Under the pieces are notes generated by a model. The model did not search any database and was not told the origin of the DNA. It was given only the letters and a program-made list of their open reading frames with translations. This document shows, piece after piece, positions 32,622-64,000 of a stretch of DNA of 64,000 nt. Source of the stretch: Tubulanus polymorphus (taxonomy: Eukaryota > Animalia > Nemertea). Each line of letters starts with the position of its first letter. The stretch's first letter is position 1. Position numbers and translations under genes: made by a program. Location: NCBI RefSeq assembly GCF_964204645.1, contig NC_134031.1, positions 17,471,807 through 17,535,806 on the forward strand, in the 5' to 3' direction.

Positions 32622-35474
32622 TTATCCATCACTGAGGAAAAACTGTTTTTTAGCAGTGTTCATATACGGCCTGTAAACCCATTCGACATCAGCTGTCTCC
32701 GCATTCTCCAACGTACCTTGTTTAATTTCATACACTGAAACAAAGAAAATATGTATTTCAATTCATGTACGTATGATTCTGAGGAATTAATGAGAATATC
32801 TTAATGGGTTCTTATGACTCCTTGATTCGTTAGAAACTCCTTAACAAATGCTTTTAAAGGTGCTTGAAACTCCATTAATTTGAGCAAAATGCCCGAAACT
32901 CCATTTAAAACTCCTTCACTCGTGAGAAATCTACTTACATTTCAATTCGAATCTTGGTCCGACTTCGGTAAGCTCAATTTCTTTATGATCGACTTTCTTG
33001 TAAATATGATGTCTGCAAATGGAAAATGATTCACATGTCAAATAACTCAAAAATTTTATGAAGGAAATATTTTCAGGGGGGCCACTTGACTATTCCCTGA
33101 CCTGCACGTTACTTTCCCTGACTCGATCTGCTAAGAATCCAATCAATTAACACTGTTTGATTTTACACGCGAGCTCGCAACAAATTTCTCTGACTTTTCC
33201 CGGGTTTTTAGCTTTTTTTTAACAAAATTTCCTGACTATTCCTAACTTTTTTAAAGAAAAGAAACTTCCCTGACTATTCCCTGATTTCCAGGTAAGAAGC
33301 AACCCTGAAAGATTATAAATGTATGGTACCTAAATGAAATTTGATCCCCTTCATTCGCGAAAGTGATCACTCTCTTGCTTTCATCTTTCGGCACCGGGAA
33401 GAGATACTTCAGGATGTTCATCACACGCTCGCCGAGTCGCGATTTGAAATTGTGGAATATTAAATGCGGATACGCTTCGGACATCGTGCCACTATCGGGT
33501 ATATCGTGTCGCATGATCGTGTTCGACATTGTAAAATGCGCTGTAGGTCCGTACGGCAAATGACAAACAATGAGGCCATCTACAAACATAAACAAGATTG
33601 ATTATTGAAAATGATCATTATTACAAAATCATGATATCTTCATATTTTTAACTATTTTTTACATGCCAAATAAAATAATCACAGGGCTAAAAAAATCTAC
33701 CTTGCATATTGCTTTTTTAAAATCATGATCTCAAACTCAGGAGTTATAGAAATAAACTGATACAAATTGTGTTGGAGTTAACAGTATGACCTGGCCGACT
33801 ACAAGAAACAAGGTATCATTTTTTAGCCTTTACTGGGTTTTTAAAATACAGTAAAAAGTACTAAATACGGTAAATTCCATAATAACGCCACGGTTGGAGG
33901 TCCAATGAAAAACAAGGCATCAAAACGAATTTGGCGTCGTAAAGAACAGTATCTTCATTGAATATCAAGATTGAGCAAATTTGTGTTCTCAGAAGAAAAT
34001 GTTGGCGTTAACAGAGCAGTGGCATTAAAATGGATGACATTATAACAAACTTTGACTGTATTAAGTATTACTCGTCCTTAACGGTCGGAGAAGAATTGAT
34101 AAAATTACCCGGTTGCCCTCTGTGCTCGTGGAGTAATATCAGATCAGTGACTTCGTTCGCACGGCACGCATCCATCAGTTGTTTCATCTCGTAGTTACCA
34201 CGATTTATCCGCTGAGAATTCGGGAATATGAGTCTCATTTCCTGAAAAAAAAAACACGAATAATCAGTGGTTACTTTTATTTTACAAGCTCTTACGTCGA
34301 CTATTCCCTGACATGCACGCAGATAATTAGATTGTGAGTCAGAGCAAATAGTTTGGGGAGTTTTCCCTAACTAGATCTACTTAGCATACAATCAATTAAC
34401 ACTCCCCAAACTATTTGCTCTTACGCATGATCTAATCATCTCAAAATATTTCCCCGACTTTTCCCTAGCTCTTTTCCCCCAAATTCCATGACTATTCCCT
34501 GCTTTTTTTTTTAAAGAATGAAAATTCCCAGACTTTTTCCTGATTTCCTGGAAAATTGCCACCCTGATAAGGATGTGATGATTCCATAATTTCAACTCAC
34601 AGTGAAATGAAACCCGCTGAACAATAACATACCTTTGCAAACATTTTCAGGCGGGAACTCGGATCTCGAGATGTAGTGACTACAATTTTCGGGTCAGTTA
34701 CCCCGGCCCATCGGTACTCATCATCGATGTGCGTCGTCAAACCTGCAGAATGTAGAGCGAATCAAGCTTCAAAAATGATTATGTGAGGGCTCAGGAATAT
34801 TCGTCTAGTAAAATAAAGTTTAGTTAATTTTTGTAAAGACAGTATAAATTGAAAGAATTGTACATACCATCAGCCCCTTCATCATCCCAATTCAACGTTT
34901 TCTCCAACGCGACGGCATCCGAAGCTAAATCTGTCGGTAGCTGTTTATTTTCTGTTTAAAAACAAATAAACTGATTATTTTCCAGACCAACAAGAAAGAC
35001 AATACAGGATATAGTTTGACAGTGTTGTGTCACGATAAGGTATACCTTTACTTCTGGGAAATTATGAGCATCAAGTTAACTGATAAGGGTATTACTTGGT
35101 CCAGGACATTGAAAATTGTAGTTTGAAATATTATTTAGAATTTTCGAATACTTGAATTGAATAACTAACCATCTATAGCATTTTTTAATTTTTGCTTTTT
35201 CTCTGCTATCGTGCGATCCCGGTCTTCTATAGACTTCCTATAAATATATTCCCTTCGAAGTCGAGCTTGTCGGCGCAACTAAAATGAAATGAGCGAGTTT
35301 CACCAGTAAATACAGCTTAATCATTGAAAAATTCAGAAAGATTCAATAAACTATATTTGACTTTGGAGCGTCTGAACCCGGAAGTAAATCAATTCTCGGT
35401 TTTAACGGTTAGAAAATGAACATGAAAATTACTAAATATAGTTTTGAGAATAGAGTACGTAAAGTTGTTACCAT
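32622..35474 (-). CDS. IMP4: U3 snoRNP protein IMP4 (Brix domain); 8 coding exons
   Basis: Exons: ATG only 35474-35472 (ATG|GTAACA), 35278-35170, 34951-34868, 34742-34633, 34241-34109, 33579-33330, 33012-32939, 32734-32622. Translation: MLRRQARLRREYIYRKS...HIDDEYRWAGVTDPKIVVTTSRDPSSRLKMFAKEMRLIFPNSQRINRG...HEHRGQPDGLIVCHLPYGPTAHF...ELTEVGPRFELKLYEIKQGTLE...EWVYRPYMNTAKKQFFLSDG*. All introns are GT-AG with consistent phases; AATAAA follows the stop. Confidence 0.97.
33075..33307. repeat. Dispersed intronic repeat family C (TTCCCTGA-rich; CAGGG...CCCTG ends)
   Basis: Repeated TTCCCTGAC units bounded by CAGGGGGGCCAC and GCAACCCTG. Related degenerate copies lie at ~34300-34567, ~46190-46400 and ~48925-49200 (the last two inverted). 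Confidence 0.65.
34326..34436. repeat. Intronic inverted repeat (hairpin) in IMP4
   Basis: Perfect 21-bp arms AGAGCAAATAGTTTGGGGAGT (34341-34361) and ACTCCCCAAACTATTTGCTCT (34401-34421), extended by imperfect outer pairing. Confidence 0.85.
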
Positions 35475-37314: not shown

Positions 37315-40300
37315 ATGAGAATCAACCTGCCAAATTCAACAACTGCCATTCGGCATATAACGCAAGGCACTTTATCTGAAATACGCAGCCAACAAGACGA
37401 CGAAAATGATATACAAGGAAAAATAAGTCGAGGTATTCGCCATCAATCAATTTACCCGTCCCATTCCACTTGCGGTTCGGTAAAAATCGACCAGTTCAAA
37501 AAGGGAATACTAGTCTAGTACCTAGCCGTCGTTCCACAACGGCACAAACAACGTCTAGGACGAAAGTGCTCATATATGGTTAGTTTTCGTCCCTCATTTT
37601 GAGGGACGAAGCTTTGAGCGTCTATTTCACCCCTTCATTCAAACACCATCAACTTACCTCAAACTGACTGTTCTGTAATCAGATGGAAGTTAACTATTGT
37701 TTGTGCATAAATTTATAATCCTAAGTAGCTTTTGACGATCGAAGTAACTCAAAACTTTTGCCTATTCGCCTCAAAAAACAGTTGAAGTGAAGCAATGTAA
37801 CAAATAGCGGTCATCCTTATTACCGAGATGACGTATTTTACCGAGATGAAATTAAATATAACATATTTATTTATTCCTTATCGATTTTAACAATTGATAT
37901 ATAATATTATATTGGTAATAAATGCCTGCTGGAGTCATATTTTACATATTTTGTCGGATATTTTTGTAGAAAAATAACTTTTAACTTTACCGATATGAGA
38001 TCGTCGATCAATCAAATTCAATATTTTCACTAGTGCATATTGAATTTTCACATTTTATTGATTTAGTCCGTATTGGAAATCCCGATTGTGGCAATCAGTT
38101 TAATTCAAATCAAATCAATAAATTCTCCGGTCCGCGTTCATTCATCAAAAATATTATTATCAAACAAGTTTTTTTTAAGTCAACAAGGTAACTAATCTAT
38201 TTATTTAAGTACAAAGGTTTGATTTGACACTAAAATCAGTTGTTGCATTGCAATTAACAGGAGTTAACCTCTATATGATATTTTAGCGTCAGACGTTGTT
38301 GGGGTATTCAGACTAAGGGAATACTGGCTCTGTGTCTGTAATCGTGAAAACGTCTTTTTTCATTTTTGTAGATGGAAAATTCTCGTGGTTTCATTGCGGC
38401 TCAAATCTTGAAGTCGTGGATACGTTTACCGGCGAACGGCTGGCTGCGTGGAGTTTCGGCGCGTGTCTCCACGACAAGAAAGCCACGATTACAGTGGTTA
38501 CCGAATATCGGTGTCCTGGTTCTCGGAAACTACTCGTCGGGGTCATGTACACGAATCAAACCAGTATGCTGTGCGTATTCAACATAAACAGATCAAAAGT
38601 AACGAAGGCAGTTGTCATGCCACAAATGGTTAGTGTCTGGCTATAAGACTGATCCTAATTGCAGCAGCCATTTCAACAGCAACAGGCCCTTCACTTACTT
38701 TACCAAATCACCAAATGTCCTTTAGGCCTACATATTTGAGGGTCCAAAGAGCGCCCCTATCTAAAATCTTCCTATCCATGCGCCCAAGACAAGCACACGG
38801 TATATGAATCAAAACGGTGAATATGGGGCCAAGAATAAACAATCAGACCTTTTGGGTTCGAACTGTTTTCAATGGTTTCCTGGCTCACTCGCTATCTGGT
38901 TGTTTCCCAGGGCACATCCGTGTTTCCAAACGTGCCGAGAAAGGGTTAAAATATAGTGAATAATCTCTGTCCTAGAAATGTTAATAAAAAGAACTCTTAA
39001 AAGATGACTTTCTTAAAAGATGACTCGATGATTTCAAAAAAGAAGTTAATTGTAAAAAGTAAATTTATCATCATCAATTGCGATGATTGCGTCATAGAAT
39101 TTCCATCTCAACGATGATACCGGTACCTCGTAATTTGACACTCCATAAATTCTTTTTTTTGTGATGATTCTCTTCTAATTTCTTATTTCAGGTAACGACG
39201 ATCGAGCACATCAGCGTCGGCGACAACGATATTCCAGACATCGAGTCTGTTCTCAGTGAACAACTGCGAATGTATTCCGGTTTAGTCGCTGTTGGTTTGA
39301 AGACCGGCCTCGTATTTCTAATCGGTATGTTTCACCGTGTAAAAAGCCTTGAACAATTAAATTTGGTTGAATGTGTACTGCCAACACTGCTGTTGGCAAT
39401 CAAGGGTTCCACTTGTGGCAAGTAAGGATCTGCTTGGTTTGCAAGCAGTTACTTGGTCCTTTGCATTTAATTCCTTTTACATCTCAGTTAAATCGAATTA
39501 ACTTTAGATAAATCAATTGTTGATAATGAAAACTATACCAATTACTGAGTGGACTTATGAATTCAGTGTATATTTGGGTGATCCTGTGATCATCGTTGGA
39601 TTTGGGAGCATTTCAAAGTTGATTGATGATGAACTGATTTTGACAACTCGAGTGCTCATCACGCTGTCAGCTCCCCCATTTCCTAACAATCCTACCAGTA
39701 CGCGTAAGCTGATTGACGTAACGAACAGAAGATCTAAGAACGTGCAGATTTCGTTTCTGGTTTTCAGATTTGAACGGAGATAGCTCTTTTACTTCCGATG
39801 AAGTGAGGCCGAGTCAACTTAGTATGATATCGCCCCGTGATACTGACACACATATCAAACGACACGCTGCGCTACAAAAAGGGGATCATTTATGTTTGCC
39901 GCTAGATTGTAAGTATGACAGCGAAGGAAAATCTGAATATTGATTCTAAAGGTAGATTGAATGGTCATCGAGTTCATGCTATGCATGCCTATCTATTTTG
40001 ATAGCCGAGTGTCATAGGAGAGGTTCGTTTCTATATCGGGCCACAGATGGTACGATATTGAAAAAATTTAACACGGGTAAGCAATGATTTTCAACCCAAT
40101 ACATTTTCACAATCATTTCACGTGTGCGTATTATTTTTTAAAATGTTTGTATTTTCGGTTCGTTTTGCGTAGATTATGTTTTCGTCAGTCAGCTACACTA
40201 CGCCAGACAGATCGGCTGCCTTTTGGTCGGGTTCAATTTCGGCTGTTTTCAAATGTGGCGTCTGAACAGTCCGGTTTTAGAGTACGTATGTTCCTCAGTC

Positions 40301-43300
40301 GCGTTGATTAGAATTTCTCTATCACCTGCAATGCGTTTAATACGCTACGTTTTCTATTTGATTGATCAGGTACAGTAGTCAGATTGAAGATGACCTAGCT
40401 CCGGTGATCGATTTTGTTTACCAAGAACCTGAAAACGACCCGAAGAATTTCGTTTATATCTGGGTTTGTCGCGGACCCAACTGTTTTGACCAAAGGTATG
40501 TGAATAATTTTTAGATTCCACGAAATTTTGATTATGCTTCGGTTTATTTTGATTATCGATCTTTGTTTTCAGGGATGGAGATTGTTCTTCTTTGTCGATG
40601 TACCAGTTCGGGTATAACAAGAAAAATCATATATCAAACTATGGATATTTGTACGAGGTATGTTCATCCCATATCATTAAGAGAAACCCTTAAAAATGGG
40701 TATGATAATTCCATTCGAAATGTAGGGGTTAAAATGATAACATCCGTTTGAATTGATATTGTGGTTTTCTATTAATGATATTCATCAAGACTGGAAATAT
40801 TCTCAACTATTTACAATGTTCATCCAGACTAGGCTTAATCGAAGTCATCAAAGTTTTGTTCTTAGTTCTGACTGGCTTGTTACGGTATAAATCATTAGAA
40901 AATGATAAAATGTCCCTGTTTTGTAGGATTTGTCGACAGTCGTACATAGGTTTGAGCACGCATTGACGATGGACCCGTACAACATGTCGGAAATACCGAT
41001 GAATTGTAGTAAACTCGTGAGCAGCAAACTGATCTGCGTCGACGCGATGAACTTCCAACAGGATTCTGAAGATTCATTCGATGGTAAGATTCTATTTTAT
41101 TCAGAAAATTTAGCTCGCGCTTGGAAAGAAACGAGAATATTGCGTTAAATTTTCGTCACAGTTTTCATTTTGCCTATCAAATTCCTGAAAATGCAGCTAC
41201 TACAGATGAAATATCTACTCAATCATGGAATTGGACGCTCATTTTGGATTGAAATGTTTGTTTTCTTGATCTTGGAATAGAGATTGTCTATCTATTTTTT
41301 TGATTGGTAGATTTGTTTTGATTTGGTATCCCTGACAAACCCACCACACCTGCCGGCAATGAATTGGAAGGTTTGATTTTGAAATCGGATTGACTTGTTT
41401 GTTTTTCAGGTAGTTCAAATGATCTTAGCCTGTGTATGTTTACATGGGAAGCCTATCCTGAAGATACGCATTCTCGGTCAGTTACGATACTAGCGATGTT
41501 CGACCTGAATCGATGGTATCACGCTCAAATGCCAGGATCCATTCGGTAAATTCAACGCACTAGTTAACTATGCATCAGAAAAGAAAAATTAATGTCTGAA
41601 AACTGATGATTTAGAGCGCTGTATAATGTACTTTTAGGCCGGCAAATCGTGAATGTTCATTTTTTGCATTTTACTCGTTGAAGGAATCACTTCTCGCGGC
41701 TAGTCATTGTAATTTAATTGTAAGCATTAAAATCTCTGCATTGAGGATTCTCGCTTTAAAGATTCTCACTCATATCTCAAAAACTTACATTAAATGTACG
41801 ATTCGTTTTGCAGGCTTGTGATGTTAATTCGGCCGGAGTCGTACGATTTAGTTCAACAGCAATGCCTTCGCCAGAACAGCATTTCTACCCGTCAGCTCTT
41901 TCATTTGGTGAGTACGGTTTAAAATAAAAACTTGTAAAAGCATACGGATAGTTCTGGGATGTCAATTGCTTGTCTAAAGGCAACTTTTAGCGGTATTTCT
42001 TGAATTACCTTTATCAACCAGTCACCATCAAAATGTTGACGTCCGTTGTATGATGGAGGTTCACTTTTACAAATGGTCGTATTTTCATCTTGAAAAACTT
42101 GAAAATCACCCATAAAATACCCGGGAAGACTTCGGAATTTCAAATTAGTGCTTGGAACAATGAACTCAGGGCTGATAGTGATAAAGTACTTGTTTCTACT
42201 TCCTATTATGTAGGATGAATTCTATCGTTCTCATTTTCTGTATCTTCTCAATGTTTGTAGATGTGATGTGTATGTTGGAAAACGGAATTGTAAGTGCGGA
42301 ATTTCTCGGCGTTCAGCGACAGTGTCTCGTTGATTTGATGCGTTTCGGCCCGATGGGAATCGTAGAACCGACTGATTTATATAATCGCTGTTATTTATGC
42401 GGCCTGCTGCCAAAAGGCAACAATGCCCCAGCGCCGAGCACCGCTTTGGTAAGCAATACTTATCCATCCATATTAAGTTAGGTATTTATCTATGTATTTC
42501 AGAAATGAATAACGAAAATTTGTACCAATCCTGAGATATATTGTGATATAAATCTGAAACAAAAAATGCAAACGGATAATTCTGATTAATTTTTTTACAG
42601 AATTTACAGCGTGAAGCTTTGCTGAGTATTGCCCTAGAATACGCAGTTGTTGGTATAATGTCTGCCTGTATAACCCAGTGGGCAGAAGGAGGTAGGTATC
42701 TAACTAGCTATAAAAAATCTCGTATACACAAGCCATTATGGTAAATCATTATCTTCGTTGAATAATCTAAATTAATCTCATTAATGTTGCTGGTATTGCA
42801 GAATTCACTCAGAAAGGTTGCAACAGACGCTTTCTGCTACAGTGGATGTGGAAACGAACCGTTCAGCTGAAGGAGTGCATCGATAAAATCTGTAAGCTTC
42901 AGCCCAACAATCCGCTTTTGCCAATTTTGAATTAACAAATCTATAACCTTTACAGGGTCACCTCCTTGATTCCTTAAACACTCCTTCCAAATGGAAAATA
43001 CTTTTAAAGATGCATCAAACTCCTTTAATTTGAGCAAAATGCTCGAAACTCCTTTAAAACTCCTTCAATTTTGAGAAAAAAAGGCAATTCAAAATTTGTC
43101 TAGTTTGTAGTTGCCTTAATCGGTACAGTTGGGACATGGATATTTTTTAACCCAATTAGGCGGTTACGGAATAAGAAGGCGTGTTAGGTATTGTGTAGAA
43201 TAAAAGTTTGGTTTTCAGCTCGCCTAAATTTAATCAACTTGTCGATCGACATCATTTTCAGGTATTCCGATGTTTAACTTCAGTAACTGTCCCGTCGATA

Positions 43301-46300
43301 GACAAACTCTACAGCTGCTTAATAACCAGTGCAACCAGTTGAATCATATCGTTTCATTATTCCAACTGCTGCAAACCGAAGAAGCTGGACCTATCACTGA
43401 ACAAGGTAATTTATGTATTCGCTAAAAGAAGACTTGTGCGATCCTAAATTGGCGATTATTTTTACGCGAAAATCAAAATTCTTGTATTGATTATTTAGGT
43501 TTGCGAGATTTAGTCAGTAAGAGCAGTGTGGTAACGTTACTGTTACAATTTACGCAGATGGTTCAGTGGTTTTTAGCCGCTCGGTTGCTGCCTGAAAACG
43601 AAGGTAAATTTCAAAATCATCAATATGTCTAGTTAAAACCCTTTCAGTGCTAACTTGTCAACTATCATCCGATTTCAAAAGAAGGCGATCCTATCATCTG
43701 GAGTCCGTTTATTACCGATAGATACGATGCATTTCAGAGAACTCGTATCCACCGGACGACCAGTACGCGTACCCAGTAACGTCGATACTCGCGGCATTTT
43801 CTGACCGACGCCAGGAATTGAGAAATATCCACTCGGATAGCGTGTTCCATGATTTATTGATGATCGATGGTATGGTCAATCAATTCGGCGATGAATTACG
43901 TCAAGTTTGGTTAAAAGAGGGCGGTACCGGAGTATACCCTCCAGCTAGTATACATGTAAGATTTAAATGAAAATATTCTCGGTTTAATGCCCCGAAATTC
44001 TAAATCTGAAATGTCCGTCATCATAATTCTAGGCGTTGCTGTCGATCTATTTATTGAACGGAGTTCCGTTGATGTTGAAACACAGTATAGTCGCGTATTT
44101 CATCCTCGACCTCATCTCTCTGCAAGCAGACGGTCGTCATGACAATATTACCGATTGTTGGTCGGGATTTTGTCAGAGGTTCTCACTGCCGCTCGGACTT
44201 ACTCGACTTATACATGGCATGTGGCAACTCGATCATAAAGACAGTGAGGTAAAAATCTCTACTGAGATTGTAGTTTTTGGGTCGTTCTTTATTCAAATAT
44301 GGTCAAACTTCTTTAAGTCATTGTAAAGAACAGTTGTAGTTGGGACCATTGATATGTTGATGACTTATTCGAGTTAAGTCTTATGCTAGTCGCAATGTTT
44401 TGCTTACTGCGATGAGATGTGTCTCTCCCAGTGGCAAGCAACATACTTTGCTCTGACAGGACTAGTCGCACACTTTTGCTGGTAATCGCATTGCAGTTGA
44501 TCTAAGCGCCCATTTACGACCAGTTTCAACCGATTGCGTCATACAAACAGTCGCAAATCAACCTACGCCTGCTTTAGTAAATTAAAACTTAAAATACGAA
44601 CTGGGACTCCGCAAGAGAGCCAGCATAAGTGATGTGATGACTGATGTGTACATTTCAGGAAGCGTTGAAAACGTTATTGGATCCGATGGTTGAGAAAGTG
44701 CTTCAACCCTGGCATCATAGACGTATATTGAAATCGTTCCTGTATCAAGGTCACGCTCGTTATGCACTGAGATATTTACACACGAGACGTCCGACAATCG
44801 TCTCGGCCGATGACGTCAAATTGAAACTCGATATTCTTCTAGCTAATGGGTTTGTAGATTATTTACGACATACATAGATAGGTTGCATGATATCTTCTAC
44901 AGTAGACTTGTTTAAAATTTTACTTATCCCAATCATCACTCTGACTACCCTGGAGGAAATCTATTGGTCCTATCTCGAATCAACAGCAGGATCTACTCTA
45001 TCAATAACTTCATCTATAAACAATTAATGCGGTTGGCATATCATTTAGTTTCGAGAATAATTCTGTAATGGCTCAATCTGGGGTCTCTGCTAGTCAGTAA
45101 TCTGTCTGTGGTTTAGTTTCACAATCGGATATTTTCAAAAACCACATTTTGGTATAAGCCCGTCCGATTAAAGAAGCTTACCACCAATGATTAGGTTAAT
45201 AACTAGGGCCTGTACTATATGCGTGTATCCTTCATTTACTGTGTTCTTTTCTAAACCTGTTTTTCGTTGCTACTTGATAACAGTTGTACGTCTGAGGCTT
45301 TCCATTACCAACGCTCTTGTCGCGATCAAATTAACTCTACAGACCTTCTTCGACATTTCTATCGAGGATGCCTTGAAAGTGAGTCGAGATTTTCATGAAT
45401 TTCGTACAGTTACGATGCTCATCTTCCCCGATTAACCACTGACTAATGACTTCATTATATCGTAAATAATTCTAGCTCAATCGATGGACAAGTTACTACA
45501 GCTGTCAATGAATAGTCAAGAAGAGGAAGCCCTCGTTTCTTACTTGAAAAACTGCGAGATAGATGGCGCCTACGCGGAGGAGTTGTTGACCATGCACTAT
45601 CTACAACGAGGCCGCTTTATCGAAGCCGTTCAACTGAACGAAAATTCAAAGCACAAAGCGCCGGTGGATGCCGACATGAGCCGGCGTACGGCTGCCCGCA
45701 ACGCCATCGTTAAAGGATACATGTCCGTTTTGCCGAACGTGCAGCGAAAATTCATCTATATGTCGAGCGGCGCCGCGTCGCAGCCGACGACGAAGAAAAG
45801 CGTGATCGCGCGACCGAAACCGCTGTCGACCGTCGTGAATAAAGATCACGGCGCTAAAGTGGTATCGCAGGCGAGTCTGATTCTCGCCGTGTTAGACAAA
45901 GTCGAAGAAACGAATCTACAAGAGGATCTACAAAACGATCCGAGGTAAAAATGACGTAAATCCCCGTTTGGAAGCTACCTTTCATCCATTCCCGGTCCTA
46001 CGCCGTGTTGTGTTTCTCTGCTTGTCCTGGGATCTTAGCCTTGAGCTTCGGCAGCGAATAAAGATTTACTCATAGATTTTATACGATGTATTATTTGAGA
46101 TACGACCTACAACAATGGCGTCATTCTCCCATCTTCAAATCATATGATGTATATTGATTCATACTTAACAATATATTTTGGAATATTGGGAAATCAGAAA
46201 CATCTAGAAAATAAATCAGGGAAAACTCGACAAATTCTGTCAAAAGTCAGAAAATTTCGAAATGCTTGACCACACGTTTCTTTATCAATACTTGACTCAT

Positions 46301-49300
46301 TGAAAATGAATTAATTGTAACATTTAAAACCAAGAAATTCCTTGGATTTACTCAGGGAAAACTCAGAGAATTAGTAAATTGGTGGAAAGTGACCTCCCTG
46401 GTCTAATTGAAACGGTGAAATGGCGCAGTGTATTTTATTTTATATAATCTTATTATTTGCAATGTAAAATATTTGGCTATATTTTGTTGTGGCATTGATG
46501 ATTTCAGAGAAACAAGTCAAGTTGTTTACGCCAGCATCATCGAGGAATTGAGTGATGGCCCGCCTGTCAGTAACACGCCATCGAAACTAGCATTCGGTTT
46601 ATCTCCTGTGAAGTCATTCCAAAAACGTTCCGACTCGGCAAAAAAGTAAGGACTTCTTAGGCATTAATGATGGTAGTTTGAGTAAGTAACATCTACATTA
46701 ATATTGTGCGTTCGATTTTAGAAAAACTCCGTATTACAACGCTGAAGCGATGGCTTTGTTGAAAACGCCACCGATCAGACATAAACCGGCTAGCAAAACT
46801 CCGATGTCGGCAAAACCGGCGCGCGCGTCGACACCTCAGTCAATCCTGAAAGTTCGTCAGATTAATGACGCCGTGACTTCATCTGCGACCAAGAAAGATT
46901 ACTCGGTTAAAGGCAGACGCATCCTAGGTATGTAGTGAATACTTTGAAAAATCTTTAGGGCCATTCATAAAGCGGGAATGCGAAACTTTCTGGTTTTCAG
47001 TAGTTGGGTTCGTAAACATGACTAAGGCAATCAATAGTACTTAACATACCGTAGCTGCTTTGAAATGTTTGAAATGCTCTTAAAAGTTTCTAAAAGTTTA
47101 TCATCCCTACTGCAGATCTAATCTCGAGTGAGAAAGAAACAGTTTCGTCTCCACTGGCGAAGTCGCCCGCCGTTTCTAGACTGCAAAAACAGACGACGAC
47201 TCCGCAGCAGACGTCATCGCCCGACCGTAAACAGTTACGATTCTCGATGCCCGGCGATACGACGACGGACAAACCTACCGATACGTCGTCGCGCGTCGAT
47301 GCCAGCAGCTCGTTGTTGCGTGCTGCGCAGCTGAAATCGATGTCGTCAAAAAAAGTTTCCATCTTAACTGAGCAGTCTCCCGATGCATCCATGGATACGA
47401 GTGAACAAGAGATTACTTTCAAATCGTCAAAAGGTAGAAATTGTTGTTATGTTTGCCTTCTTATTCATATTTACCCTTTACAGTCAATACAGTCACTCCT
47501 TCCATATAGAAAACTATCACTTTTGGCTTCAATGGTATGGCATTTTCTATTTAACTCACCGCGGCTTGACGGGTAGTATGGTGCTACCTTCTAAATACAA
47601 ACTAAAACCAATCGTGAAATGAGTGAAAAAATACAGTGATGAAGTTAATTACAATGGATGATAGACTGATTTTATGATTTTTTTTAAAGTTACTGGTGAA
47701 TAGTACGAGCTGTTTCTAATTTTCGATGTTGTGTTTTGATAGTTGCCGCCGCTGGTGGAGACAACGCGCACATCGGAAGACATTCACCCGTCGAGCCGAC
47801 CGAACAACCTTCAGCCTCGCAATCATTCCTCGGTCGATTGTTCTCATTCGGGACTCCCGAGCAGAAGTCATCTCCCGCAACTCGACTGTTCACCGGTGAA
47901 ACGTCGGAATCGACGCGACGAGTCGCCCATTCAATCGACGACGAATCGCAAGACGACGACGATGATCAGGAAGACGACGAAGAGGAAGAAGAGAAAGCCG
48001 ATGACGCCGACGACGAGGAAACAGTCGAAGATGAAGCGACGATGGAAGAGGGAGAAGATGAGGAGGATGTTATATCATCAGGAGATTCGGTCATTACCGA
48101 GGAGGATGCGGCACTACTAACGCCACCTGTCGTTCCTGAAGAGAAAACGGTGAATAAATAATCAGTTTACTGATTTAGATTTAGTTTTACAATTCGAGAT
48201 GACATTTTTGAAAAGTTTGAGAATGTTTGGTGTTATATATGACTGGTTCATGTTTGTGTATTTCTATTGATTTTTAGGTTGAAGAAGTGACGCCCACTGG
48301 GTCATCGGATGAATCGGAGATGTCAGGAGAACCAGGTATGTTTTAATACGTATTCGACCGATTCCTGATAGAAGTATGAAGAAAACTCCACCCTATGTGT
48401 TAGCGTTGGGAATGTAACTGTAAATGTGTCATGTCTGATGCAGGTACCTTAAGCGCCTCTCTTAAATTGTTCTTTATGAAGGTGCTGCTATGAAATGAGT
48501 CCTTGTTTCGTGGTTTTGTATGAAAGTTTCTATAAATTAAGTTTTTCTCTAGTTGTTTTTGAAAAATATTAATTTTGCTCGAAACGACTGATGTAAAAAC
48601 ATCGACGTTTGTTTTGTAGAACGAGACAGAACTCGTCAGAAGTCGCCGTTGTCGTCCGGATCGTTCATGATGCAAATGCGATCGGGAAAAGGAGGCCGCG
48701 ACCAAAGTCCAGATGAGGTTAAGCCTTCTCAGGAATCTCCAGAAAAAACAGGTAGGTTAGAGCGAATTGTTGCTCTGAGAATCGTTGATATTTCGTCTAT
48801 CATCCGAAATTATTAAATCGTGATTTGTGTTCGTTAACATTAGGAATGCAGCACAGTTTTACATTCGCGACGCCGGTTCCTGTGGAAACAGATGCAGGTG
48901 AGAGATAAACAACGGTCTTAGTGGACCTGGAAAACTGGGAAAATTCAGGGAATGGGAAAAATGTAGAAAACAGAGAAACTGTTGAAATCTGCCAAAATTT
49001 TGGAAACTGGGAATTTAGATATGCTATTGACCACGTATGTCTTTATGAATATGTGATTCATGAATAATGGTTATAGATTGTGACATTTTAAACAAAGAGA
49101 TTTCTCAATTTAAAATTCCATGGAATTCAGGAAATTTTGTGTTATAACATGGAAAACTCAAAGGGAATTTGTAAATGGGTGGAAGGTGGCGGCACCCTGT
49201 AGCATATGAAACTCCTGTTTTGCCCATCATGTAGTCGGTGGTTGTTGGAATATTTCTTTTCACTTTTGTAGCTTCTATCGAAAACAGTATATCTACGACG

Positions 49301-50289
49301 CCATCGACTCCGGCGAGACCGTTCGTCTTCTCTCCACCTCTCACTCGATCACGACAACGTCTACGTCGTAGCAACGAAGAACAAATACCGAAACCAGATT
49401 TACGTCTGCCTTCTCCGCCGAGGACTCCCGGCACGAGGTCGTCGCCGCCTCGTCGCAGCAGTCGTGGGGAAAAGGTCGCCAGCCCGATGGTTTTGACATT
49501 CGAGCAGCAAGACGTGCCTGATTCTCCGAGTTCACGGACGCGATCAAACCGGTGAGATACACAAATACAGCATTCGTAGCGAGTCTCCTTAAAAAGTGCT
49601 TACTTTTGAACAGATTTAGTAGGGCCCTTACTTAGCACGGAAAAAAATCTTGAAAAGTTTAAAAATTGCCTACAAAATTCTTGCTTTTGACTTTTGGTAT
49701 CCCAAATTTTTTTTTGACAATTATGTACATTATTATGCCAGTGTTAATGCCTGTATAAACATATTGTTGAAGATAACCTGTCCCACACTTCTGTGCTATA
49801 TAAAAGCTATACCAGTGTTTCACAAGCATGTTATGGATTAGAACGAGGGCCACTCTTAATGATAGGAAAAGTCCTCTCTTTTGTCTCAGTATTATGAACC
49901 CTGAAATTCCGGTCCGGATGGAAATTAATCGGCTGCCTTTTGAAATCAAATTTTCACATTTTCACCACCCACTGAAAACATCGTCTGGAATGGAGTAAGA
50001 ATGAACAATGATTTACTGCTTGCTTATTTTCAGGGGTAAACGAACTCAACGAATCCCATTAACGTCATCGTCGAAAACTGTCGCCGAGTTGCCCGTCGTC
50101 GGTGACGTCCGATCGTTAACCCCAGACGCGGTGGTAACGCAGTCTCCTCATCAGAAAAAACAACAAGACAAAAAAGCAGCCAGCGGATACCGCATGGTTC
50201 TACGTAATCGCAGGTCGTCGCTGTTGACTCCCGGCAGTCAAAGCACAAAATCTCGGCCATCAACTCTGGAACGTACGCGAAATAAATAA
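37315..50289 (+). CDS. AHCTF1: Nucleoporin ELYS / AHCTF1 / MEL-28; about 30 exons
   Basis: Exon 37315-37432 joins 38372-38628: ...GKISRDGKFSWFHCGSNLEVVDTFTGERLAAWSF...LCVFNINRSKVTKAVVMPQMVTTIEH, matching the ELYS beta-propeller start. Later exons give FCLQEPENDPKNFVYIW, FDLNRWYHAQMP, QWFLAARLLPE, LLMIDGMV...GGTGVYPPASIHALLSIYLL, LIHGMWQLDHKD and HYLQRGRFIEAVQLN, then an S/T-P-rich, acidic and basic disordered tail ending at 50289. Confidence 0.93.
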
Positions 50290-50759
50290 CGTAAATTCGA
50301 AATAGAGAATTGTATAATAACGGACTAAGGATTTGTACTTAAAAAGAAAATTCAAGGCACAGTTTCACGGAAAATCAAATTCGAGTTTTAAGATAAGCTG
50401 CTGTTCATTGCTTCATATTTCTGATAGAAATATTTTGTTGCGAGGCTCGGGCCTTGTTTTAAAGATGCCAATGCCGCAATTTATTTACACCGTATGCATT
50501 TAAGAGACGAATAAGAATTGACTCTGTGTGATAACGAGAAAGATGGCGCGTTAGTAGATTACGGCTGAATCTGATTAGTTAATGATGTTATGTTGCATGA
50601 TAATACATGTACATGATGTGTGAAAACATGGTTGATAATGTAATTTCATTGAATATAAATAAATGATGATTTATATTAAACATGTTCCATGATTTCGTTT
50701 TTCATTACGGTGATGGAACTGTCGTATCTTATTTCAAATTCATTTCGAAACGAAACTAC

Positions 50760-53800: not shown

Positions 53801-54868
53801 TGTTGCAATTACCTGCAACGTTCGGCGACCTCCTGTCGTCAATTTACAGGGACGATGAGGTATTCGCATTGCACACGGGATTTCTACGGTTTCGAGACAT
53901 ACGATACGATCTGACACGGGTTTCCTCAGATCTTTAAGCGCCCACCAGTGTTAAGCACCGACTCTCCCTTCTTTTTACTTCCCAGCGATTTAATCAACAG
54001 ACCACGTACTCGGGAAACGAACGCATTTCCGAAAATTCCGAAACAGAAAGTTCGCATTGGTGTTTCGACGTCGTCAAACGACCTTTTCCGTTGCGGCTAT
54101 TTATAAAAATATACGGACCACACTGACATAGTCATGTCGTTCCTTGTTTTATTTATAGGAAACATCGATCCTTATTGGTGTTTGTAGAAACTGCTTGGAT
54201 CCATTTCGTCTTTCATTCGATAAGACGCTTTAAGATCATCAAAATCTGGATGCTTCAAAACGGCGATAATGGCTTGATCTCAACATTCACTGCAATACAG
54301 TCTCCTATATACCTTTATATGACCAGTGGAAAGAGTTGGTATTCTACATGTAATTTGGCAAGATGTATTTTCCGAGGTTATTTCGGATCGAACCCCGTTA
54401 TAAGTAATGTGTACTGGTCGTTATTTTCATAATGAGAAATTATTGTTACGACAGCAAATGCACTAAGTCCAAAAATAAACGAAAAATTTACGAGTAGATT
54501 AGCGTTCCTTCGCCATCGTGCAGACTTTGTTCCGTCGGTCCTCTGAATACCACCTGAAATTTCCGTATGTATACCGTGCGGCAATTGAAGCGACAAAAAG
54601 CATTAAGATGTGACCAGAATAGATTATGACAGTCATGTTGCATATTCAAATAAACGATGAGGGTTCAAAAGGATAAACTTCCTACGCATTTACATTTCCG
54701 GAATACATGTCTACCGTAATAGGCTATGCCTTTTGTTTTATGAATTAATGTATGCAACATGTTCATCCTACCTGTTGTTCTTTTTTTTTTATTCGCGATA
54801 ACTACGTTGGCGTTTAACGACGAGGGCTGACGAGCGGATGCTGGATTCTTACTGGCGCGCACATTTCG

Positions 54869-54893
54869 TGACGTCATTCTTCAGAACTTAAAA
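54869..54893 (+). promoter_or_regulatory. CRE palindrome and TATA-like element upstream of the NWFamide exon
   Basis: TGACGTCA at 54869-54876 and CTTAAAA at 54887-54893, ~140-160 bp before the ATG. A TGACG half-site lies at ~54828. Confidence 0.6.
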
Positions 54894-55031
54894 CTTCGAT
54901 GGCGCTACGATTCGCACCAGACCACAATTCCAGCGCGTGAAAACCATCCGTCGTAAGGCTGATCCTCATCGCATAAGATCAAGACGTGTGAATTATCTCT
55001 CAAATCTTTGGACGTTAAAGCTCACGAGAAA

Positions 55032-55116
55032 ATGATGTCCCGAGCAGTTTTCATAGCTTTCTTCCTCATGGCCGTCGTGGTGACAGTGTCCCAAGCGAAC
55101 TGGTTCGGAAAGAGAG
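55032..55116 (+). CDS. First coding exon of an NdWFamide-type neuropeptide precursor (signal peptide + NWF-GKR)
   Basis: AAAATG context, then MMSRAVFIAFFLMAVVVTVSQA-NWF-G-KR and a consensus donor AG|GTAAGT (phase 1). It has a hydrophobic core and an S-Q-A signal-peptidase site immediately before NWFG-KR. The downstream exon is uncertain. Confidence 0.88.
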
Positions 55117-58100
55117 GTAAGTAGCGGCTTTTGAAATTAAACATGTCTCGATTTCTTGGTTAGGTTGAACAAAGACGTTAAAAAACCTGATGATTAGAAT
55201 ATGCAGTTCTGAATTAAACCTCGCCTTACTCGGCAGCCAGGCTACCGGGACCGGAAAAAATTGACCGAGGTCCCGTAAGCAAAGTTAAGGATCGGAAAAA
55301 TAAGATGCGAAATCAGAAAATGATTTCGTTTCAATCCATTCGTCTAAAGTTCTAGTTTGTTTGGGTATGTCCGAGTAAGGCCAAGGTTTACTGTCACAGC
55401 GTATACTATTTGGAAAATTGAATACTTAGCGCAATGAAGAAAGGTAAAAAAGGTTACGTTAAGTCGAGAAGATGCACACAATATCCGTAAATATACACGA
55501 GAAAAATCCCACAATAAATTCCGCTAAAGATGAACAGTTCTTGAATAGAAATATGTATTCTTTGGCTGAATTATTTGAGGGATTTCTCTCGTATGTTTCT
55601 ATACGTTTGTTAGCAAGATTCGAAATTTTGCTTGTTACATAGAATAAAGAGTCGCCAGATAATTCTATTAATCCTATTGAATCATATTTTATGAATAGTT
55701 AAAAAAGAAGCATATACTTTAATGATTGTCAGAATTACCATCAGAATCATAAACAACGCGTTCATTTGAACTTTTAAACTTGTGCCTTCAAAGAAAGTTG
55801 GCTCGCGCGTCGTTAACGCTTTGAAGTCTCAGAGAAATCTCCAGTTACAAGTCACTTATCGATATTTCGAAACAGAACTCACAATGGAAGGATGCTGCTA
55901 TTGATATCATCCATCTCGTGGTGGAAGAAAAATATTCAAAACATGACGATGACTCAAATCACAGATTTGCCAGTTCCGCGAAGTATCACCTCATGTATAC
56001 GAAACTGAACATGTAAAGACAATTTGCCTCAACTTAGTTTGGTTACGATATTGCTTATGTTCCGCGTAATGCATCAGTCGCATTTGAAGATTTAATTGCG
56101 CTGACCAGTTTAATCTTACGTCCTTCGCGTATGGTTTCATCTGAATGCTCTGCATATTAAGTAGACCCATTATTTCCTATTCCTCATACTTTTTAGATGT
56201 TCTTACTACTGTTCTTTTTGTCATTGCACCGATGTATTTGAACATAATCTCAAAGTGTTAAGTTTAGAACAAATTCTAACTCCATCATATTTCCCATATA
56301 CGTATATACCAATTTGTATAGATATGATGTTTAGATCAATCTATACGATACATGTGTTACGCCTTTATATAAAGCGAATTGGGATGCCATATATGTATCA
56401 TCGTTGGTCAATCAGCAATTCTTGACCTTGTTGGCAATTAATCTATCAGCCATGACATGTTTCGCTTATCCACGAATCGCGGGATGCTTTAAGAAGATAT
56501 AATTGAATACCTTGTGCACGTTATTTTTATTCTGATATATTCAAGAACAAGTTTAATCCGGCCCTGTGTATAATGGCGATAATTTGATACTTCTTCTGTC
56601 GGCATGATCAAAGAAATTCGAAAGAAAACTATTTGCGGTTTTACATACGGAATAGCCAATCGGTGCTTTTATTTCGGATCACGTGGTCATACCGCACGTC
56701 GGTCGACCAATGAAAAGTTATTCGTCGATCTCCGAGCAACTTTTCTTTAAAAAGTACGTTCAATTTAAAGTAAGGAAATTTAGAATTATGAAACTACCCT
56801 CGGAATAAAGTTTGGGACGCCTCCGTTGCTCGTAAAGTCAATCTACTGATTCATTCACTCCATCGTATGCGTGAATAATCATTTTTTTTTATTACCATAT
56901 TGATGCTTTGGTGGACGTGCCATCATACATCATAACTAGAATTTCGACAATTACGCAATATCTGCGAACTATCGGCAACAGAGTTCACCTGAAAGGGGGC
57001 ATTTATGCACACAGTTCTTGAAATGCTTGGATTTTTTAGAAAATTATTTCTGAAAATAACGAACTTCAAAGTTCAGTACCCTTGATTTCTATGCGCACGG
57101 CAAAAACTGACCACCGATTTTTATATCGCTCTCATGTCGCATTGTTGTAATTTTGAGAAATGATTTTTACATAACTGAAAACTAGAGATTCACGCGGTTT
57201 GAATGTTGCTGAAACTGTCAAAATCCATCCATGGACAGATGAAATATGATACAACACGCATCACAGATAGTTTTTAAAAAAGAGAAAAAAATGACCCAAC
57301 AATACGGGACAAAAGTACCATAACAAAATGGCGGCTAGCAACTGTAAAATGGTTTATTGTTCGTCGTTTTACCCGCGTTAGCACCCGGTGATATACGATT
57401 TATACGCAATTCAATGAACAAAATACACTAGAGATTTGAAATACCGTCTGGTTTGTTTCATCAATACATGGTGCGGTATTCGTCTGAACTCCTAATCACC
57501 CGCACTCCCACACCTTTATCCGATTTCAAAGGTATAGCTTAGTTTAGTTGTCAATTGGTTATGATTGTCATCGTCAAAGTTAATTAGATATACCGAGTTC
57601 ATTTTGCTTTTTGTCCACAAACCTGTCATCACCGGCCGCTAAAATAACAACGAAGCTTATTTTGCCCGACACGCTTTTTTGTGAAATGTTCGTTTCGACG
57701 CGCAAAAATGAATCCGAATTGCGGGAAAATTGGGAATAGACAAAGTCGCGTAGCGAGTGGCTTTGATACCGATTTTCTCTATGATTTTTCAAACCCATAA
57801 TGAGATTTGAGTGCGAGTAATGTGAACTGTCGAAATGGGGATAGTGGTTGTAGATTGGATTTGCCGAGAACCGGATATGATATGGATTTTCTTCGAGCTT
57901 TCCTAAATCTGCCTGGCATGGATTCGCGCGGCCGCTCCCAAAGGGATTCCTAATCCCGCATTGTAAGGTGAAATAGAAAAAAAAAAGAAAAACGATGTTC
58001 TTAATGTTGAAATCAGTTTGAGGCATCGCCGAAATACATAAAGCAGACGGTGGAGTTGTGTTACTTTACAATTATTCTGTACTTCACTTCTTGGAAAGTC

Positions 58101-61100
58101 TCCACAGACAATGTTTTCCTCCAGGGGCGGATACAAGGGGATGGTGCAGGGGGTGCGCACCCCCTAAAATGTAAATGGCTCAATTCTACAGGGAAAATTA
58201 AGAATGTTAAATTGATACCTAAAGAGTTTGTTAAGCTTTTGTGTATTTCCAAAAAAATTGAGTTAATGTTTTCCGATGAGCTTTCTTTCGGGGGGGGGGG
58301 GGGGTTGCCCACGGAACCGAATGTTTGTTAGTTGGAACACTGATCTGGAAATGGACGACCACGGGATTCAGCATGTCCGCTGTTGTTCGGACTTAGTTTC
58401 AAGATGGCCGACACTGTAAAAAACGTTACGACCGAGCTAGAGTGCGTCCGGTAAAGTTGTGACTTAGTAGACTAGCTACGAAAACCGAAGGTTGGCTTGG
58501 TTGCCAATATTTCCTACCACAGGTGATGGTCACTTGAGGTTCAACCTCTAGTTTGCAGGTATAAAGGAAGAAATGGTGATTATATGTAAAGCTAGTTCTT
58601 CATAATTCGAAAACGAAGTCAGATTGAAATATCAAGAAATGTGTAGCAAATAAAAGGAAAATGGGGAAAAAATTGTAGGTGTTACCATTTCGTCACGGAT
58701 TGTCGTTCTTTGCGAGAATTATTCTCGCGTGATTACTTAAGCATGCAGACGATCTTTGAGAAACCACGTGTAACGTTTACAGATCAATGTCAACAGACGA
58801 GAATCACATCGACACCTGAAAAACTGGATGTGACAGATCGGGTTTTTTTCAAACTCGAACCATTCATTTGATCATAGCAAACAGCCGAACTTTCTTATGT
58901 ATTTGATTTTTCTCTGCAAAACAAAAAGCAAAATACTGTAACTTGAAAAACGTTGTTCGCCTTTGCAACGATGGGCACACAACAAAAATGTTAAAGAATT
59001 ACTGCTTTTCACGCGTTACGCGATATCATCAATAAATGCACAAGCCTCTGTCGATATCGATCATAAACGAATTTTTAACGAACAGATTATACTCAATTTC
59101 AATACCAAATTCATGGCGGTACGTAGGCCTACAATGCCATGATGATTGAAACCTTAAGATGAATGACGAAATAAAATTTCCAAATCCTTTTAGAAAAACT
59201 TAAGAGTGGATCTGTTTTGAACATGAGCACTTGTAGAAAGTGGAAATTTGAGATTTTTGGTCAATTTCCCAGGGACGCTGCTTAACTGCGTAGATAAATA
59301 GTATCGATCAGCCAATCCTTATTATCCATAAATAAACAACGAACATGGAAAACCATTCTCCGAAAACTTTTTTCGTTTCTTTTGACGGCAGATTTTGTCC
59401 TCGAAATAGAACGAACTAAAACCCAACAGCAACCCCGGGGATATTTAGACAATGGCGCCGAAATCTGGTGACGCGCATCGATCGGAGTTTGTAACCCAAC
59501 TCTTTACTAGCTGTTGATGTTGCAAACTAATACTTATCCCATTCAGGTCTGGAAATCCGGTACAGATGCTATCGACAACGCAAAGTCTATTATTTATTCG
59601 CTCCGACCGACGAGCGACGGTATACGGGGATCTAAACTATTGAATAATTGACGAAAAACATGAGAATTAATATCGCAAAATCCGACAGAAAGTTTACAAG
59701 AGATTTTATTCCCCTTAATCTATCAGCTCGTCTGCGCATGCCGATATTAGGTCATCTCAGAGAATTGTCACGTGATGGTATCCAGTAACCGACTTCAATG
59801 AAGATTTTTCAAAAGAAAAAAAATACGTTTGAAACGAATATCTGTGACTAGGTTCTCGAGCTAAAACTTCTCTCCAGATAATGAGTGGCTTATATTGCAA
59901 GTTTGTTATTGTTTTACAAAGAGATGCTTTTTACGAGACCTTTTGTTTTATTCGATATAAAGAATTGCTATAGTTCAAAAGAAACAATCTTCTTCGCTTC
60001 TATCCTTTTGAGTTTTAGTTACGCATACATTACATCTCGAATGGAATCTCCAATCAAACGCATAAGGCGCCGAGAAATCTTACCGGGTGAATTGGATTTT
60101 CATATGATACCCCGGAAAGTTTTTATCAGCAAATTACGTGTGCAGGCCTCGATTTTTTTCTCATATTTCATTGTTCTCGATAGATGAAAAATCAACATAC
60201 ATCCGATATCTCAAGACGTCATTCGTTTGAAATAATCAGTCGACGCTTTCGTAATTCCGAATGAACTCGGTTGCGGGATAATGACTTTCCTTTCGTATAT
60301 ACATAGAACAAACTTATCGGGTTTATTGAGCAAGTATATACACATATGCGATAACTATCTGTCTCAGAGGGTGTCGTGTATCGTGCATTGTTCTCCTGGA
60401 CAATCGAATCCGCGCAGGTATGAAATTAATCATCTATACTTTCGCGATTGCGGACTTTTTTGATGTCGTCGCCATTATTAGACGATTCCGCGAATTAAGC
60501 CGAACCCCTGATGCGCCCAGGTACTTCGTACAATACCGAACGTTAGTTATGCGAAATGTGAGCCACCATTTTATGGCGCTATATAATGGCGATTGATGAT
60601 TGCGCATCCCTTTTATTTTTCTGTTAATTATTCACGAAGATGTAGGGAAATTACAGTACATGGAAGGATATACCTAGGCCCATACAGAAATAATGTATCG
60701 GTTATGTGCGTTTGATTTAGTGTTTCCATCTTATGAAAATGAAAGAACCATGTTGCAAAACTGAAAGCTATCTTATTTCAATCAGTTCCTATGTCCACCA
60801 TCACTCTATTTACTTTACTCTGCTTACTTTAATCTGCATTGAAAGTTCCGAGTCGAGATGGAAGTCAGAGATTGCAATCGAAATCTGGCGTCAGGTTTCA
60901 ATATCTCCCGATGTATCAAGTTTATTTTCGACGAATCATTCTTTATTCATTTCTTTTTCTCGAAAAAGCAATACATGATCATCGAGTCTATCTCAGTGCA
61001 ACTCGTATTCGACCGGAGAGAACAGTCTGCGCGCATTATTTCGAGAACGTATGATCGCGCAAGCAGAAGAAAAATTCTAACGTTTGCCTGGAGATTCTAA

Positions 61101-62637
61101 CATTCAGTTTACGGACAAAAACCACCGGTTCTGGCGATGCTGTTACATTCTTTAGTTTATTATTGCAATCGAATCATTTGCTTGATCGCAGTTTATGAGG
61201 CGATAGTTTTGTTCGTTGGAATATATACCTGAGGCGAAGCGCGACAGTCCTCAACTCTAGCAAACATCGGGTCAAGTATTGATGATTTGCAAACTAGCAT
61301 AAAGGAATGTATATATAGCATTATTGAAATTAATTTTACTGAATATATTCCTTCCGAATGAGTTGGTCATTTTAACCTTTTAAACATGAAACATTTACAT
61401 GAGAACAATTTAACGTCTTTGAAGTATGGAATATGTATTGTCTTTAAATGCGCGATTCCGTTGAAACTACGATCATTAATTCTATGAAATTTTCTAAGAA
61501 CTTCTTAGAATTTCTAAGAATAGATAATCAATTTCCCAACTCGTTGACGAATTATTCTCCGTCTCCGTCGACGATCTTTCGATTTTCTTTCCGCAACTTT
61601 TTCGTTCGCTTTATCTTGAGTTGTATAAGCTGGTTGGCTAACTGCACACTTTTTCAATGACCTTGGTATCGATAGAAACAAAATATTGGAAAAAGCACTT
61701 TTTCGGATACACGTTTTTCTAAGATTGCGAAATGCGAGGTCTCGAAAAAATAAATACTTCATCTGCGCAGATTGCGATAAAAACTTAAACAACTTCTCAA
61801 AATAATTAATCACTGTCGAGTCGATATCATTTCACTCGGGTTGAATTACTTTTCTGTAATCAGCATCAGAACCGAAATGTAATACGAAACTGACTTTTTA
61901 GAAGTGCTGATTACATCGCACGCTCCACTCCCGTTACAGCATTTTGGGCTTTTTCGTACTTACAGAAATTCGAGGACTGTAACGATTGTTCGAAAATGTC
62001 ACTGCTATAATAAATAATCTCTGTGTCTGTTTTTAAGTTCCGTCAACAAAGTTTTAAACATTTTCCGTCGTCAGTCTGGTTTTCGGTAAAAAAATGGTTT
62101 TAGCTAAATGTTACAACGTCGAAAATGAACACATGATACTTTGATGAGAAAAATTCAGAAGTTAGTTCTGGCTACATTTTCACCATCTCAAAAATGGGTT
62201 CATCAAGGGTGTATGATGGCTATTTTTATTCATTTAGCGTAGGCAGTAGCGAATTAGACATGAGATCGAGACCTTATAGATATAAGAAACACGTGCCTTT
62301 AAACAAAAAGACTTCAAAGAATCAAATTTCAAAGAGTTTCTACATCACGGGAGACTTAGAACGGCTTTACGTCGTCGGCTTCACACACACTACATGTATA
62401 TGCAATTTATTCATGATCGAAAAGAATCTACAAAGAATCCGCAAGAAGTCGAACTCGAAACGATTGAATACTGAAAGATTTGAAGAGATCTAGATTATCA
62501 TATATCACGTCTATTAAAGCAAATATGTATAAATGTATTAGCATTAGCTCGTACGTCATTCAGTGTCCGATGCTTTTTCTTCGTCCACCAGCAAACATCA
62601 CATGAACAATCGCGTCATCATGTCATTTGTCGAATAA

Positions 62638-62900
62638 TAGCTCCAGGATCAGCCCGCCAACTTTAGGACTTAGGTCATGACTGAACAAGGGCTCTGAATT
62701 TTAAGTTTCGCATACTTCACGTGCAAATGTTAACAGCACAATACTGCCAAAAATATTTCAAATAAACTGCCATTCATGTTTTAGAAATAATATAGGGAGA
62801 AAAAATGATCGTGGTCTAGACACAATATTGGCTCTTTGAAGTCATTTGACTCAGGAGTCGGACTAAAATCCACGCCATGAAACTTTAGGTCCTGGAGCTA
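62638..62900. mobile_element. MITE-like element with short terminal inverted repeats
   Basis: TAGCTCCAGGA ... TCCTGGAGCTA termini, with weaker sub-terminal complementarity; non-coding. Confidence 0.55.
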
Positions 62901-63110
62901 GATTTGCTTTGTTTTATGTTTAATAAGCTCAGATCAATTTCATATTTCGTTCAATGGCGAATGAATTCAATGCGGCTTATAGATACATCGCCTGGGGTTA
63001 CTCCAAGTTTCCTTTTAGCGGTGGATGGAAGGTGGTGAGATTTTTGCCGCCGTAAAAACCGTTACAATATTGTTTGTACACATCGATACCTAGTATACGC
63101 TGTGCGAGTC

Positions 63111-63472
63111 GGTTCTGTGTGACTCGATGTGCATTACGTCATCAATATTGGCGTTTCAAAATAACATTTAGAATTGTGAATTTTGGCGTTTATTTTGTAA
63201 CTAGATATCTCATAACTATATTTTTTTCATAACCGAGATATTTCATAATTTTATATTTGATGAATTTTGATAATCGTTTTTGAGAGGATGCGCACTACGT
63301 CAGCAACATACCGGGACTAGACTGGTTGCCGGTCAATTCAATAATCGATATTCAAGTTCAAAATAACTTGTATAATTGAACCTTTATACCATATCATTTA
63401 CACTATATCATTCATTGTCGACAACATTAAGCAATATATGTGTTATTTTTCAAGGCGTCAATAAACTTTCAA
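63111..63472 (+). repeat. Dispersed repeat family A, copy 2
   Basis: Same ordered blocks and same orientation as 23489-23813. Confidence 0.85.
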
Positions 63473-64000
63473 GTTAGTAGTTTTCTGGTTAGGTTATGAA
63501 TGAAAAGGAATGCCACGTCGCTCCTCAAACGTTGTACGGAGACACCCCCATTAATCCGTCGGAGTATTTTCAGATTGCGGGATGTGCTTACCGTTGTCAG
63601 ATGTCATTTTCAGTGCATCACGCGCGCATATCGCGGAAACTATGTGACTTTTTCGCCAATTTTCTATTGTCAATTGCCATCTGTCAATCTCGCATCGTAA
63701 CTGTCCACTAATGGATCGGGAAATACACAACAATCGTTTTCTTATCGGTTTTCTTCTGCATACCTGGTCAACACCTCGCGAATGCTCTCAATTGAATTCG
63801 TTGGCTTTTTAGCCAATTCCATCATCTTCTTGACAGGTGCGCGAATTCCGAATAACAACTCGTGAAAATGGAAAGAACGATCTTTTCGCGGTATATATGA
63901 TTGGAATTGATTATAGATACCGGTATCATATGAAATGATAGCTTAAACCTTTCGGGGGGGGGGGGGGGCATTCGAATGATCTCTTGTTTAATATCCAATG

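Follow-up and report, generated by a model that had tools for sequence, protein, structure and literature searches.

The 64,000-nucleotide stretch of Tubulanus polymorphus DNA analysed here (the window; genome C7:17471807-17535806) very probably carries the first exon of a single-copy precursor gene of the NdWFamide family, with two coding exons, a phase-1 intron of 11.2 kb and a predicted prepropeptide of 75 residues. The gene is a further member of an already published family, known in nemerteans since 2021. Its interest lies in the Aplysia-type tripeptide Asn-Trp-Phe (NWF), encoded unchanged in a palaeonemertean, and in the complete genomic model supplied for a neuropeptide gene that the protein collections searched do not hold.

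Two coding exons and the intron between them

The coding part of exon 1, as read from the window, is 85 nt long and is interrupted by the intron in phase 1, 85 nt into the coding sequence (Table 1). Its donor agrees with the consensus MAG/GTRAGT at eight of nine positions. No ATG lies between the in-frame upstream TGA and 55032, which is therefore the first possible start in exon 1, and position -3 of this start is an A. When the frame is read through the donor, it stops after 30 residues (TAG, 55122-55124). Because the read-through frame is only 30 residues long, the exon falls below usual ORF-list thresholds, and the plus-strand list of ORFs of at least 40 aa has no entry at this locus. The first-pass annotation had described an 85-nt exon absent from the ORF track, and a reading of 55032-55116 confirmed it; the end at 55122 that was given for it includes the donor hexamer.

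Table 1. Features of the putative NdWFamide-type gene and its neighbours. Positions are those of the window unless prefixed L003, which denotes the 30 kb fetched past the window end.
Feature	Position	Strand	Remarks
Brix-domain (IMP4-like) exon	33254-33601	-	domain match
ELYS nucleoporin exons	38317-50300	+	domain match (beta-propeller and ELYS domains)
Palindromic CRE-like octamer TGACGTCA	54869-54876	.	156 nt upstream of ATG; candidate promoter element
In-frame upstream stop TGA	54960-54962	+	window reading
Start codon ATG	55032	+	read directly from window sequence
Signal peptide (predicted)	55032-55097	+	22 residues: n-region MMSR, hydrophobic core of 13-15 residues, c-region ending SQA
Asn-Trp-Phe, predicted mature tripeptide	55098-55106	+	residues 23-25; window 55098 = genome position 17526904
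Gly, predicted amide donor	55107-55109	+	window reading
Lys-Arg, predicted dibasic convertase site	55110-55115	+	GKR = residues 26-28
Last exon base, G	55116	+	first base of the Gly29 codon
Donor GTAAGT	55117-55122	+	
Intron part within window	55117-64000	+	no family-like exon; interspersed repeats
Exon 2	L003:2337-2479 = contig 17538143-17538285 = extrapolated window 66337-66479	+	beyond window end
Exon-2 acceptor ttttttgtag/GT	L003:2337	+	pyrimidine-rich AG, matching phase 1
Exon-2 stop TAG	L003:2477-2479	+	exon 2 encodes 47 codons
AATAAA, candidate poly(A) signal	L003:2847-2852		about 370 nt after stop

Before any sight of exon 2, four short motif patterns were derived from the nemertean NdWFamide precursors in the literature. 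In a motif scan of 39 kb downstream, one open segment contained all four, in order. It lies 11.2 kb downstream of exon 1 and 2.3 kb past the window end. When the 38.9-kb region was shuffled 200 times with its composition preserved and read in six frames, no open segment reached beyond two of the four motifs. Within the window, neither motif scans nor a survey of every phase-1 acceptor after 55117 gave a convincing second exon.

With this segment as exon 2, the single intron is of phase 1 and measures 11,220 nt. The coding parts of 85 and 143 nt add up to 228 nt, a multiple of three, giving 75 codons plus the stop. The codon created at the junction (G+GT) encodes Gly, as in the GKRG of the published Tubulanus precursor. 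That orthologue is cDNA-derived and continues across the predicted junction with neither gap nor insertion, which supports the splice well, if indirectly. The layout also fits one described in a study of Conus, in which the NdWFamide gene has a large, TE-rich first intron and secreted-peptide genes show a general bias towards phase-1 introns 50-100 bp into the coding sequence; the intron of the ribbon-worm gene is of this phase and position. One of the interspersed repeats in the intron (63040-63490, about 430-450 nt) has at least 40 further copies on many chromosomes, at 70-79% identity.

Exon 2 holds no second copy of the tripeptide. Its translation contains the conserved C-terminal pattern of the family, namely aromatic-x-[DEQ]-Y-L, D-[ST]-x2-3-[VIL]-L-[KR]-x-I and [FY]-I-x3-[WY]-E. 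Structure prediction from this single sequence (exon 2 alone, mean pLDDT 81) gave a helix at residues 2-15, a loop and a helix at residues 19-45, and the hydrophobic moment is highest over the conserved second motif. The predicted helix-loop-helix, conserved across phyla, could, more speculatively, be what the processing machinery, or any isomerising machinery, recognises in the propeptide.

The phase-matched exon 2 with four family motifs, never approached in the 200 shuffles, and the colinearity of the product with published orthologues leave next to no probability to the reading of exon 1 as a chance short ORF beside a chance donor, with no gene at all, even though a 30-codon ORF is by itself weak evidence and other NWFGKR-coding strings have arisen by chance in the genome. 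That reading is already refuted to the extent that sequence analysis allows. The first-pass proposal of a hidden NdWFamide-type precursor, its signal peptide placed directly before NWF-G-KR, is instead borne out by the reading of exon 1, by the phase-matched, family-specific exon 2 and by colinearity with the published nemertean precursors.

Relation to published NdWFamide precursors

The NdWFamide family is documented as lophotrochozoan-wide. Thiel et al. 2021 (PMC8557429) list precursors from nine nemertean and three phoronid species together with mollusc members, and De Oliveira et al. 2019 is a further source for molluscs. Family membership of the ribbon-worm product rests on by-eye alignment with the precursors printed in the supplement of PMC8557429. 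The published precursors combine a signal peptide with a single [N/H]-[W/Y]-[F/Y]-GKR and with two helical motifs that are conserved, and are small (about 75-85 residues), a range that includes the 75 residues of the ribbon-worm precursor.

A comparison with lophotrochozoan NdWFa precursors, as suggested by the first-pass annotation, revealed this architecture in nemerteans, phoronids, gastropods, a bivalve and a cephalopod. The gene had been expected to matter most if the host was not a mollusc. The host is indeed a palaeonemertean ribbon worm, but the expected novelty is absent, as nemertean and phoronid precursors were published in 2021, including one from Tubulanus with an identical NWFGKRG.

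The closest family member is that published Tubulanus 'polymorphus' precursor, which is transcriptome-derived (PMC8557429). Both proteins have 75 residues, start with MSR and share VTV-[ST]-QA/NWFGKRG (the slash marking the proposed cut). They are colinear across the splice junction (GKRG-D-[DE]-VNAFK-x-YLA) and again in DS-x-HVLRMI-x-FI-x-K-x-YE, where both have Tyr in place of the Trp of other nemerteans. The beginning is typical: MSR, MSK or MASR opens nine of the ten nemertean sequences, and the ribbon-worm product agrees with this when read from its second Met. However, only 41 of 75 residues are identical (~55%, by-eye count), the tails are unrelated and the linkers differ in length by one residue.

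Judged from these two sequences, an identity of ~55% is too divergent for one species. This identity, together with the lack of a second copy in the genome, fits the published view that the name 'T. polymorphus' has covered separate Atlantic and Pacific species, of which the Pacific one is T. ruber (PMC8468679). Tubulanus genomes have been described as 'very small', at 313-358 Mb by flow cytometry (PMC8468679); the assembly used here is 268 Mb.

The precursors of NWYamide of heteronemerteans, HWYamide of phoronids and Lottia and NYFamide of Idiosepius are built in the same way, with both conserved C-terminal motifs present, and differ from NWF at tripeptide position 1 or 3. The peptide predicted here keeps the Aplysia-type NWF, as do those of the published Tubulanus and of hoplonemerteans.

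In the gastropods Aplysia, Lymnaea and Euhadra, the precursors encode the same NWF as a single copy directly behind the signal peptide and followed by GKR. Like the ribbon-worm precursor, they are small and have a C-terminal helical region, although this region has strongly diverged. Gastropod NdWFamide is Asn-D-Trp-Phe-NH2. The D-Trp, the cardioexcitatory action and the tissue distribution have been shown in gastropods only.

Predicted processing and the question of D-Trp

By rule-based criteria, the leader has a basic n-region and a 16-residue uncharged run (residues 5-20) with a mean Kyte-Doolittle value of 2.7. The (-3,-1) rule for signal peptidase is satisfied at SQA/N, with the small residues S and A, and would equally permit cuts following residues 14, 18 and 20. 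Across the published precursors of nemerteans, phoronids and molluscs, the sole invariant boundary lies directly before [N/H]-[W/Y]-[F/Y]. Because only this boundary is conserved across the family, we take SQA/N as the probable cut.

Cleavage of the same precursor two residues earlier (after TVS), where the (-3,-1) rule is equally satisfied, would yield the pentapeptide (pyro)Gln-Ala-Asn-Trp-Phe-NH2 rather than the tripeptide. Gln-Ala does precede NW[FY] in Tubulanus and heteronemertean sequences, but SG or MG stands there in hoplonemerteans and KC or NA in phoronids, so that Gln-Ala is not kept as part of a peptide. The invariant boundary of the family is that of the tripeptide, and the NdWFa purified from Aplysia is a tripeptide. 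The pentapeptide is thus improbable, and the tripeptide NWF-NH2 is the likely product.

Under standard neuropeptide processing, the prepropeptide would enter the ER and be cut by signal peptidase after SQA. A prohormone convertase would then cleave after Lys-Arg and a carboxypeptidase would trim both basic residues, leaving Gly for use by peptidylglycine alpha-amidating monooxygenase and giving Asn-Trp-Phe-NH2 ([M+H]+ 465.2245). The 47-residue C-terminal peptide left over, with its predicted helix-loop-helix, might, speculatively, be co-released or serve sorting and processing. By analogy with Aplysia, NWFamide may act through a receptor as a neuro- or myo-active transmitter.

Enzymes of this pathway appear to be encoded in the genome, in which eight matches to proprotein-convertase P domains were found and PHM/DBH-type copper monooxygenase domains are also present. 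Such domains would be expected in any bilaterian, and their presence means only that the pathway has no gap there. In the searched supplements of PMC8557429, Lineus NdWFamide precursor strings occur only within sequence lists; the tripeptide is not known to have been detected chemically in any nemertean.

It is possible, though we put it forward only tentatively, that Trp at position 2 is isomerised to D-Trp as in gastropods, that isomerisation of residue 2 is ancestral to molluscs and nemerteans and that the genome encodes a neuropeptide isomerase. If Trp2 were isomerised, the peptide would resemble achatin/GdFFD, fulicin and D2-ATRP, short secreted peptides with a post-translational L-to-D change at residue 2. 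However, these come from unrelated and mostly multi-copy precursors.

Chirality is not written in the DNA, and the molluscan neuropeptide isomerase is described only as an activity in extracts of the Aplysia CNS, without a sequence. If D-Trp is present, an animal with a small genome must encode this enzyme, and should D-Trp peptides exist outside molluscs, the genome would be a place to seek it. A chromosome-scale genome of 268 Mb with a single NWFamide gene may therefore be a convenient system for D-Trp neuropeptides outside molluscs.

Copy number, variation and genomic surroundings

The 268-Mb genome holds a single copy of exon 2, even when E values up to 10 are admitted. Across the genome, the pattern N-W-[FY]-G-K-[R/S] occurs at seven sites, compared with a single site for its reversed control, and only the copy at 55098 follows a Met-started hydrophobic leader. 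The other six were rejected as neuropeptide genes, as none has any leader. Two NWFGKR sites, L009 (C1:11942508-11943124) and L012 (C11:2275748-2276364), are embedded in two copies of a single repeat family; their flanking translations have ...KTSDQ...LNC-NWFGKR-L.F... in common, with stops nearby, and they are not neuropeptide genes.

A search for protein homologues with exon 2 alone gave no candidate. The sole HMMER match to exon 2 (P0001; 1.84 billion representatives) was rejected as a compositional artefact, with no BLASTP alignment to the query and with matches to seven unrelated Pfam families. The gene product and detectable relatives of exon 2 are absent from both protein collections searched, in agreement with the earlier remark that so short an exon is easily missed by annotation.

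Sequencing runs were searched with a 4-kb, mostly intronic stretch, a choice of query that may have concealed small RNA holders, and no run on record as RNA was returned. In the three runs that were returned, contigs pass across the donor into intron sequence with no joint and so represent genomic DNA.

Contigs of a second individual (S2: X2, X3) show no differences over 54765-55150, which spans the promoter and exon 1. The intron piece 55671-56073 has eight substitutions in 403 nt (~2% heterozygosity), and 54438-54624 has one substitution and a 2-nt deletion. Identity over the promoter and exon 1, set against the differences in the intron, is a weak hint of constraint.

These data bear on whether the gene could be a silent or decaying copy, with its structure intact but no peptide made from it. 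That would accord with a run search yielding genomic DNA and no RNA run, and with a long, repeat-rich intron. Nevertheless, it is very unlikely given an intact ORF, two canonical splice sites, a good start context, an AATAAA 370 nt after the stop and a promoter and exon 1 free of differences between two individuals; moreover, the genome has no other copy, and a silent gene would mean loss of the family from this animal. A functional gene is the preferred reading.

The CRE-like octamer upstream of exon 1 was discarded as evidence for a promoter: the window holds three such octamers against an expectation of 1.2, and a count of three was attained in 12 of 100 shuffles, which is within chance.

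Exon 1 is separated by ~4.7 kb from the last large open frames in the ELYS region, which precede it. The first-pass mention of IMP4 and ELYS agrees with the neighbouring genes, a Brix-domain exon on the minus strand and ELYS exons on the plus strand.

Elsewhere in the window, at 3865-6540, an 892-codon stop-free frame on the minus strand overlaps one of 677 codons on the plus strand. A Pfam search of this region gave no match. Strand skew is strong over 4001-6000 (GC skew -0.33). A minisatellite occupies 4464-5250, with 13.8 copies of a 57-nt (19-codon) unit at 93% match, and repeats of 126/252 nt lie at 5350-5823. It could represent either a coding exon of repetitive sequence or simply a minisatellite.
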